From contig NW_020844818.1 of NCBI RefSeq assembly GCF_003704095.1, positions 1 through 64,000 on the forward strand: a stretch of 64,000 nucleotides of DNA, given 5' to 3'. Position 1 is the first letter of the stretch. Every line of letters begins with the position of its first letter. Made by a program: the position numbers and the translations under genes. The notes below the pieces were generated by a model. It worked only from the letters and a program-made list of their open reading frames with translations. It was not told where the DNA came from and ran no database searches. Source of the DNA: Pocillopora damicornis (Eukaryota). Shown piece after piece: positions 57,771 through 58,412 of the stretch.

Positions 57771-58412
57771 CTAGATTCTATAGCGGTGTCTGTTTTGAGA
57801 CACTTCGACGGGGTGGCTTCCCCCATCGCTTGAAACTCCTTCATCTTCCTCGACTGTGTTCTTCCGTAATTGACGCAAGTAGCTGTGGATCATTTTCCTT
57901 TCCTTGATGAGATCTTGTTCGATTTGAGAATACTCGTAGTTACAGCATTTCTCGTAGAAAACTTTATGAGGTTTGCATTTTGCCAGCAATCGGCGGTTGA
58001 TAGGATGGCTGGTACGCTTCCAAACAGCTGTTTTCATTTGGTGAAAATGTCTATTGGGAGAGATTTCGTCTGGGTTACTCGTGTACCTGCATGTCTCTCC
58101 TATTTTGGCCACATCTCGGCCGAGATTGCAGCACTTTTCCCTCCGAGTAAGCTTCTTTAGATTTTCAGCCTCTTCGGTTCGAGGTTTTGCTGTCGATCCG
58201 TCCGTAGCCTGTGTTTTTGCGGGCCTGACATCGAAATCTGAAAACGGAAGAAGACGAAAAATTTAGCTCAAATGAATCAAAACAAAAAAACACTTTAATG
58301 AGTATTTACACCAACCTTTCAAATTTTCACTGTTTTGAACGATGACTGCTCCTTTGGTCAAAAAACTGAATAAGACCACTAAGGTAATGCAATAAATTGA
58401 AATTGGCTTCAT
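57771..58412 (-). CDS. Uncharacterised ~187-aa secreted prepro-protein with anaphylatoxin-like cysteine domain
   Basis: Exon 1 58412-58316 (MKPISIYCITLVVLFSFLTKGAVIVQNSENLK, signal-peptide-like), 78-nt GT-AG intron, exon 2 58237-57771 in matching phase. KKLTRR precedes EKCCNLG-x9-C-x37-C-x9-CC. Confidence 0.8.

Follow-up and report, generated by a model that had tools for sequence, protein, structure and literature searches.

A single-copy stony coral gene for a putative secreted six-cysteine protein with a possible anaphylatoxin-like scaffold

Overview

The window analysed here, the first 64,000 nucleotides of contig NW_020844818.1 of the stony coral Pocillopora damicornis (assembly GCF_003704095.1), carries on its minus strand, between positions 57771 and 58412, a gene with two coding exons whose translation in the window gives a precursor of 187 amino acids (aa). 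The gene is real and transcribed, and the conservation of its six cysteines and loop lengths in more than 20 homologous clusters is far beyond chance; its structure, its transcription, its conservation, the purifying selection acting on it and the cysteine frame itself are directly supported. The reading that we favour, at a probability of about 0.5, is that the product is a secreted extracellular ligand or defence protein built on a divergent scaffold of the ANATO type, i.e. that of the anaphylatoxin modules (PF01821) found in complement components and fibulins. Secretion, cleavage, disulfide pairing, the fold class and the function are what we infer.

Gene structure and transcripts

Coding exon 1 (58316..58412, minus strand), which is documented by the sequence, by RNA contigs and by an identical public protein, has 97 nt, that is 32 codons plus one base, and starts with the ATG at 58412. 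Coding exon 2 (57771..58237, minus strand), documented by the sequence and by RNA contigs, includes the TAG stop codon at 57773-57771. They are separated by a phase 1 intron of 78 nt (58238..58315, minus strand) with a GT at 58315-58314 and an AG at 58239-58238, which read as CT..AC on the plus strand, and the Asp codon that it splits is completed by exon 2. The 58316/58237 junction, with exactly these 78 bases skipped, was recovered from poly(A) RNA: assembled contigs of four runs, each from a different study, carry it and lack the intron. A first-pass annotation, made from the letters of the window without database searches, had proposed this same junction and a two-exon gene, and its coordinates were borne out by the RNA contigs and by the identical public protein. 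It had also described the 97-nt exon as absent from the track of open reading frames (ORFs); the exon itself is real, but at the cut-off of 25 aa it is listed inside an ORF of 53 aa. Since the RNA contigs are collinear with the genome from exon 2 past 57300, without any further splice down to that position, the gene has no other intron and translation does end at the TAG.

Searches were made with each exon on its own, and the joined protein was used only as a database record (P0076; pdam_00005402 / LOC113669280 / XP_027041083.1, ‘uncharacterized’). This record is 100% identical to both exons, which means that the spliced model is already in the public annotation. The gene is present in a single copy, no paralogue being found in a search of the whole genome (234 Mb, 4393 contigs), and its stand-alone status, assumed in the first-pass annotation, is supported. 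Spliced contigs of about 1.39 kb were also found for P. meandrina and Stylophora.

At position 58161, the RNA contigs of two runs have a T instead of an A on the plus strand, which changes Asn58, in the pro-region of the precursor, to Lys. As the P. meandrina protein and a cluster representative of the family (P0001) share this difference, it corresponds to a lineage or allelic polymorphism in a variable part of the protein. An antisense ORF on the plus strand (57870-58160) was considered and rejected as a shadow of the coding strand.

A family under strong constraint

Sequence searches identified named orthologues in P. verrucosa, P. meandrina, Stylophora pistillata and Porites evermanni, together with about 20 clusters from transcriptome and metagenome assemblies, the most distant of which are 36% identical. 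A profile search of a 5.8-billion protein set with the family alignment recovered no relatives outside the family and no member with a Pfam domain. The family is so far found in stony corals only, and its core is under strong purifying selection.

The six cysteines and the lengths of the loops between them (12, 37-39 and 9 residues) are kept in all 25 family sequences examined, and a pair of basic residues in front of the first CC is present in 23 of them. The first-pass description depended on both the cysteines and this basic site being retained in homologues, as they are. Conservation, measured over 19 non-redundant sequences as the share that has the majority residue, is highest in the CC...C (0.85) and C...CC (0.80) segments; the long loop between them reaches 0.55 in its first part and 0.73 in its second, the helix following the core 0.56, the tail 0.42 and the basic site 0.65, and the pro-region falls to 0.26. 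Between Pocillopora and Stylophora, the synonymous divergence (dS) is 0.38 and the ratio of non-synonymous to synonymous divergence (dN/dS) is 0.11 overall. By region, this ratio is as low as 0.03 in both the core and the helix, but reaches 0.37 in the pro-region and 0.30 in the tail. At the locus of a distant coral (L008), where the protein is only about 55% identical, an intron of 87 nt lies at the same position and in the same phase.

Layout of the precursor

The precursor begins with a putative signal peptide (residues 1-21; 58350..58412, minus strand), having a basic n-region, a hydrophobic core of 15 residues (Kyte-Doolittle mean of 2.8 at residues 8-18) and small residues at -3/-1; its cleavage after T-K-G is a heuristic guess based on the -3/-1 rule. 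The hydrophobic character of this N-terminus is conserved in the orthologues. It is followed by a poorly conserved pro-region, beginning in exon 1 and predicted to be disordered, that contains a polar stretch of 31 residues at the start of exon 2 and leads to the sequence K-K-L-T-R-R. The last two residues of the latter form a dibasic RR (residues 64-65; 58140..58145, minus strand), a candidate convertase site two residues before the CC that corresponds to the basic pair of the 23 sequences mentioned above.

All six cysteines are encoded in exon 2 and lie in a core of the form CC-x12-C-x37-C-x9-CC (residues 66-131; 57942..58139, minus strand), in which they are invariant and their spacing is fixed, and for which AlphaFold gives a predicted local distance difference test (pLDDT) score of 78. 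The long loop between the third and fourth cysteines (C3 and C4; 57978..58088, minus strand) has 37 residues, among them an invariant H, KT, W and L, and its conservation (0.55-0.73) approaches that of the cysteine frame (0.80-0.85). It is about 23 residues longer than the equivalent loop in the coral's own ANATO modules. A metal site in this loop was considered and rejected because only one of its histidines is invariant. The core has an isoelectric point (pI) of 9.5 and a net charge of about +7.5.

After the last CC comes a predicted long amphipathic basic helix (residues 132-159; 57858..57941, minus strand), to which point the helix prediction at positions 88-131 of exon 2, the dN/dS of 0.03 and the hydrophobic moment. 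An [RK]K motif between the helix and the tail is conserved in the main group of the family. The tail itself (residues 160-187; 57774..57857, minus strand) is acidic (pI 5.0), rich in Gly and Ser and ends in a basic RH[RK] motif; it has a pLDDT below 50 and a dN/dS of 0.30, and in distant family members it is neither conserved nor acidic. In total 56 residues follow the last CC, and the C-terminus reads ...RYRI, without the arginine effector end of anaphylatoxins. The layout given in the first-pass annotation, with a hydrophobic N-terminus, KKLTRR, six cysteines in one frame and a helical and acidic tail, was found at the positions given there.

Resemblance to anaphylatoxin modules

Six conserved cysteines in the order CC...C...C...CC are a defining feature of ANATO modules (PMC8960428), and this order is found in 25 out of 25 family sequences. 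As in the modules of known proteins (C3a, C4a and C5a of C3, C4 and C5, and three modules of fibulin-1 and -2), the core starts with CC-x2-G, in which the G is invariant throughout the family, has a first loop of 12 residues (10-13 in coral ANATO exons) and an aromatic pair shortly before the last CC, is preceded by basic residues and continues from the last CC into a helix. Four ANATO exons of the coral's own genome share the invariant G and an F, the latter corresponding to the F/Y found ahead of the last CC in the family, although the aromatic residue lies one position further from the CC in the 187-aa protein.

These genuine modules came from a genome-wide scan with PF01821, which detected five exons, all on other contigs of the same genome and none at 57771-58412. 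They are L003 (1501-1623), L004 (1501-1608), L005 (1501-1611, minus strand), L006 (1501-1611, minus strand), in which a Tyr replaces the first Cys, and L007, which matches only the second half of the model. Apart from the first Cys of L006, the genuine exons have the spacing CC-x10-13-C-x14-16-C-x6-CC. Two of them lie about 44 kb apart on contig C2590 and are probably either two C3-like genes or two modules of a single gene.

Several results weigh against counting the 187-aa protein among these modules, beginning with the loops. Their lengths of 12, 37-39 and 9 residues, set against 10-13, 14-16 and 6 in the coral ANATO exons, reflect a conserved insertion between C3 and C4, about 23 residues long, fixed in length and foreign to ANATO, as well as a third loop longer by three residues. 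The C-terminal effector arginine, a defining feature of C3a/C5a-type anaphylatoxins (PMC8960428), is missing: about 20 residues follow the last CC in C3a and C5a and end in this arginine, whereas 56 follow it in the 187-aa protein. Nor is the protein released from the alpha chain of C3, C4 or C5 like a complement a-fragment; it is the product of a stand-alone two-exon gene, whereas ANATO modules sit inside large proteins.

The sequence tests point the same way. Neither exon 2 nor the core has a Pfam match even at E<=10. Three divergent members from two clusters (P0017 and P0038 in one, P0018 in the other) match PF01821 at 12.5-13.3 bits (E 0.17-0.29), with no member of the family reaching the gathering cut-off of 21.4 bits, and these matches cover the N-terminal half only, the best one (13.3 bits) extending over model positions 1-19. 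An hhalign comparison of the family with the coral's four ANATO exons gives a probability of 2.9%. Searching the PDB with the family profile returns nothing at E<=10, and searching it by sequence gives no relevant match for either the single protein or P0017. As a control, the four genuine ANATO exons of the coral were made into a profile, and this profile retrieves C5a at 2.3e-6 and C3a at 0.002-0.04, which means that a genuine coral ANATO is easy to recognise and that the 187-aa protein, by this measure, is not one. Membership in the ANATO family is not supported by sequence.

Some similarity is nevertheless left when the cysteines are taken out of account. Every family member scores above cysteine-preserving shuffles against the coral ANATO profile, the typical fraction of shuffles reaching its score being about 0.03. 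With the middle of the second loop left out, hhalign aligns 30 columns, from the CC to C4, with a P value of 0.0028, a score reached by column shuffles in 3.3% of trials. These sequence-based tests are marginal (p of about 0.03) and use a trimmed loop.

Predicted fold

Two AlphaFold models were obtained, one of exon 2 (pLDDT 65) and one of the core (pLDDT 78; predicted template modelling score, pTM, 0.69). In both, a helix runs through the first CC, a short helix lies in the C3-C4 loop, another precedes C4 and a long one extends from C4; the middle of the long loop is predicted at low confidence in each of them. Foldseek found no match in the PDB at E<=0.001 for either model, although C5a and C3 are among its ten weak rows (E of about 9.7), at 20% identity. 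An exhaustive structural aligner run against 48,161 chains placed the exon 2 model on the ANATO part of C5 at rank 7 (Z 3.9, 2.9 Å over 52 residues, 21% identity) and on C3a at rank 8 (Z 3.8, 2.7 Å over 58 residues, 21%). The core model was placed on C3a at rank 4 (Z 4.5, 2.2 Å over 55 of 77 residues, 20%) and on the ANATO modules of fibulin-2 at rank 12 (Z 3.9, 2.8 Å over 55 residues, 14%). In a second look, it also superposed on mouse C5a (Z 3.7, 2.0 Å over 48 residues, 19%) and on residues 689-738 of human C3 (Z 2.5, 2.2 Å over 47 residues, 26%). All these superpositions, at 2.0-2.9 Å over 47-58 residues, have Z values of 2.5-4.5, a range that the aligner flags as possibly just a common arrangement of helices. 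Searches of the ESM Atlas gave only matches below 0.9 and nothing informative. The check by AlphaFold and Foldseek suggested at first pass gave a divided answer: the predicted helical core does superpose on C3a and C5a, but with a Foldseek E of about 9.7 and Z values of 2.5-4.5 only.

These results bear directly on the main rival explanation, according to which the family would be an orphan secreted protein confined to corals and with an independent fold, its resemblance to C3a and C5a being due to convergence or chance. None of the sequence-profile tests gives more than a marginal result, whereas the genuine coral ANATO exons are found with ease; the Z value is at most 4.5, level with unrelated helical fragments; and the conserved loop of 37-39 residues and the third loop of 9 residues occur in no ANATO module examined. 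On the other hand, ANATO modules, from four different proteins, are the sole family that recurs in every fold search, and they do so with the lowest root-mean-square deviation. Identity to them is 14-26%, compared with 2-11% for most other rows, which are fragments of large helical assemblies, and the non-cysteine positions score above cysteine-fixed shuffles. An identity of 20-26% over the superposed residues suggests that, in the predicted models, the cysteines coincide with those of ANATO modules, which are paired C1-C4, C2-C5 and C3-C6. We regard an independent fold as a serious alternative, though the less probable one, and the ANATO signal as real but weak, the scales tipping somewhat towards an ANATO-like scaffold. 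In favour of the anaphylatoxin likeness that had been noticed at first stand the cysteine order, the CC-x2-G start and the recurring fold rows; the Z values lie in the noise range, and the sequence tests failed or were marginal.

Processing

The [KR][KR] pair that 23 of 25 sequences have at -4/-3 from the CC, where the first-pass annotation had placed a basic site, divides the fast-evolving, predicted-disordered pro-region from the constrained core and fits a pro-peptide boundary as far as the sequences indicate. Precursors of hormones and antimicrobial peptides with dibasic sites, for example damicornin of P. damicornis, are cut by subtilisin-like convertases, and the 187-aa protein resembles them in its signal-like N-terminus, its variable pro-region and the conserved basic pair before a cysteine-rich part. 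It differs from them in that the predicted product is not a short peptide, as use of the RR would leave 122 residues (14.5 kDa, pI 9.2), in that the cleavage is a prediction only and in that the two basic residues may do no more than open the first helix. Because the site has no furin-type R-x-[KR]-R motif and begins the first predicted helix, cleavage at RR is plausible but unproven.

The dibasic KR/RR and RR in the C3-C4 loop of the pocilloporid and Porites sequences had raised the further idea of a two-chain hormone, in which cleavage at these sites would remove a connecting peptide as in insulin. Insulin and relaxin do have six cysteines, a helical core and, as in some family members, dibasic sites between cysteine clusters. 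However, the 187-aa protein has a different cysteine pattern, with a CC at both ends of its core, and the segment between the cysteine clusters is conserved and in part helical. In insulin-type precursors, it is normally the connecting peptide that is conserved least; here the loop is nearly as conserved as the cysteine frame, its second half at 0.73 compared with 0.26 in the pro-region. Moreover, the dibasic sites are not conserved in distant members: the first is missing in nine distant clusters, and of the second a single basic residue is shared by all sequences, this second site lying inside a confidently predicted helix (pLDDT of about 88 or more) that adjoins C4. Maturation into two chains, one of the suggestions of the first-pass annotation, is thus very unlikely.

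Possible roles of the mature protein

According to the reading that we favour, the gene would encode a secretory precursor of 187 aa made up of a signal peptide, a disordered pro-region, a dibasic site, a helical core that three disulfides would hold together, a basic helix and an acidic tail. After secretion and a probable trimming at RR, a basic protein of about 14 kDa (pI of about 9.2) would act outside the cell as a specific ligand, cytokine- or hormone-like, and possibly also in host defence; its candidate interaction surface would consist of the conserved inserted loop and the helix after the core. The single copy, the rigid architecture, the dN/dS of 0.03 throughout core, loop and helix, the conserved promoter (see below) and the presence in adult poly(A) libraries from several studies together favour a specific conserved partner, and thus a ligand or binding protein. 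A host-defence role is possible and would be compatible with an anaphylatoxin-like scaffold.

The same constraint argues against a fast-evolving venom component. A venom or nematocyst toxin, an idea also put forward at first pass, would account for a small, secreted, cysteine-rich product with a prepro architecture, yet the gene is single copy, its protein is 89% identical between genera, its core evolves at a dN/dS of 0.03, its promoter is conserved, no similarity to toxin families is seen in Pfam or the PDB, and the C-terminal arginine effector end is lacking. We consider a toxin the least probable of the explanations weighed here.

A more substantial case can be made for a cationic antimicrobial or host-defence precursor, in which the core and the amphipathic helix would be the active parts and the acidic tail and the pro-region would serve as neutralising pro-pieces. 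The pI of 9.5 and charge of about +7.5 of the core, the amphipathic helix, the tail with its pI of 5.0 and the conserved [RK]K between helix and tail would all fit such a protein. The antibacterial activity of C3a-type peptides and the occurrence in P. damicornis of damicornin, an antimicrobial peptide made as a prepro form, lend it some credit. In contrast, effector peptides directed at microbes do not usually show a dN/dS of 0.03, a single copy and rigid loop lengths, and the tail is not acidic in distant members; this explanation, derived from sequence properties, is improbable, if less so than a toxin or a two-chain hormone.

A stronger version of the ANATO-like interpretation can also be formulated, namely that stony corals possess a free-standing, C3-independent cytokine of the anaphylatoxin type, an ANATO-derived module that would have become a gene in its own right, would be released by a convertase of the prohormone type instead of a complement convertase and would signal through a receptor contacted by its conserved inserted loop. 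We hold this to be rather doubtful. To our knowledge, corals have complement C3 with a genuine anaphylatoxin module, and in cnidarians such modules have no known receptor or role in signalling; if the stronger version were true, anaphylatoxin signalling could be uncoupled from the complement cascade in an animal of an early-branching lineage.

Public annotation already includes both the gene and its protein, as uncharacterised; what is new is the domain map, the evidence for constraint and the tentative link to ANATO with a conserved insertion. The identifiers LOC113669280, pdam_00005402, XP_027041083, LOC111340393 and XP_022802977 and the UniProt identifiers are absent from the main texts searched, and on anaphylatoxin or ANATO in cnidarians only work on C3 itself was found in the literature. 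As a constrained, well-transcribed, stand-alone and putatively secreted protein on an anaphylatoxin-like frame, it is a tractable candidate for a coral cytokine or defence factor, of relevance to immunity, symbiosis and the biology of stress in corals. Should the resemblance prove convergent, it would still represent a conserved, uncharacterised and coral-restricted family of presumably secreted proteins with no Pfam model, for which a gene structure, a promoter, a domain map and candidate processing sites are now defined.

Promoter, transcript ends and neighbouring sequences

The region upstream of the gene was compared among the window (58413-58640), P. meandrina, Stylophora and the distant coral with a protein only about 55% identical (alignment A6). 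The four share a CCAAT-like box, TGAATGAC, a TATA-like box and two long blocks of the 5' untranslated region (UTR). The CCAAT-like box (58608..58615, minus strand), whose role is presumed, reads GTCAATCA, or GCCAATCA in the distant coral, and the TATA-like box, TATTTAA (58568..58574, minus strand), lies 30 nt upstream of the ends of RNA contigs X2 and X9. The former contig stops at 58544, where adapter letters follow, and the latter at 58537. These ends and the alignment indicate a probable 5'UTR (58413..58544, minus strand) starting near 58544-58537, with long conserved blocks and no upstream ATG. The promoter and the 5'UTR are unusually conserved, and the 5'UTR blocks may be regulatory.

Two other RNA contigs, X1 and X10, extend past the TATA-like box, to 58765 and 58627, respectively, and for this reason the transcript start given above is inferred only. 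Their extension may reflect another start site further upstream, read-through or DNA present in the libraries.

At the other end, a putative AATAAA poly(A) signal (57149..57154, minus strand) would close a 3'UTR that starts at 57770 and ends near 57140. A transcript between about 58544 and about 57140 agrees with the lengths of the RNA contigs (1307-1317 nt); as the contigs were compared with the genome down to 57300, the poly(A) end is a likely position rather than an observed one.

About 6.5 kb downstream of the gene, both P. meandrina and Stylophora carry a Peptidase_M16 gene (472 aa) on the opposite strand (L010 17090-20639 and L012 16382-20642, respectively). Synteny is thus conserved between these two corals, and the neighbour is probably a housekeeping gene. 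Finally, a run of N at about 52940-53040 of the window, corresponding to an assembly gap or a masked stretch, appears as X in the ORF at 52897-53238.

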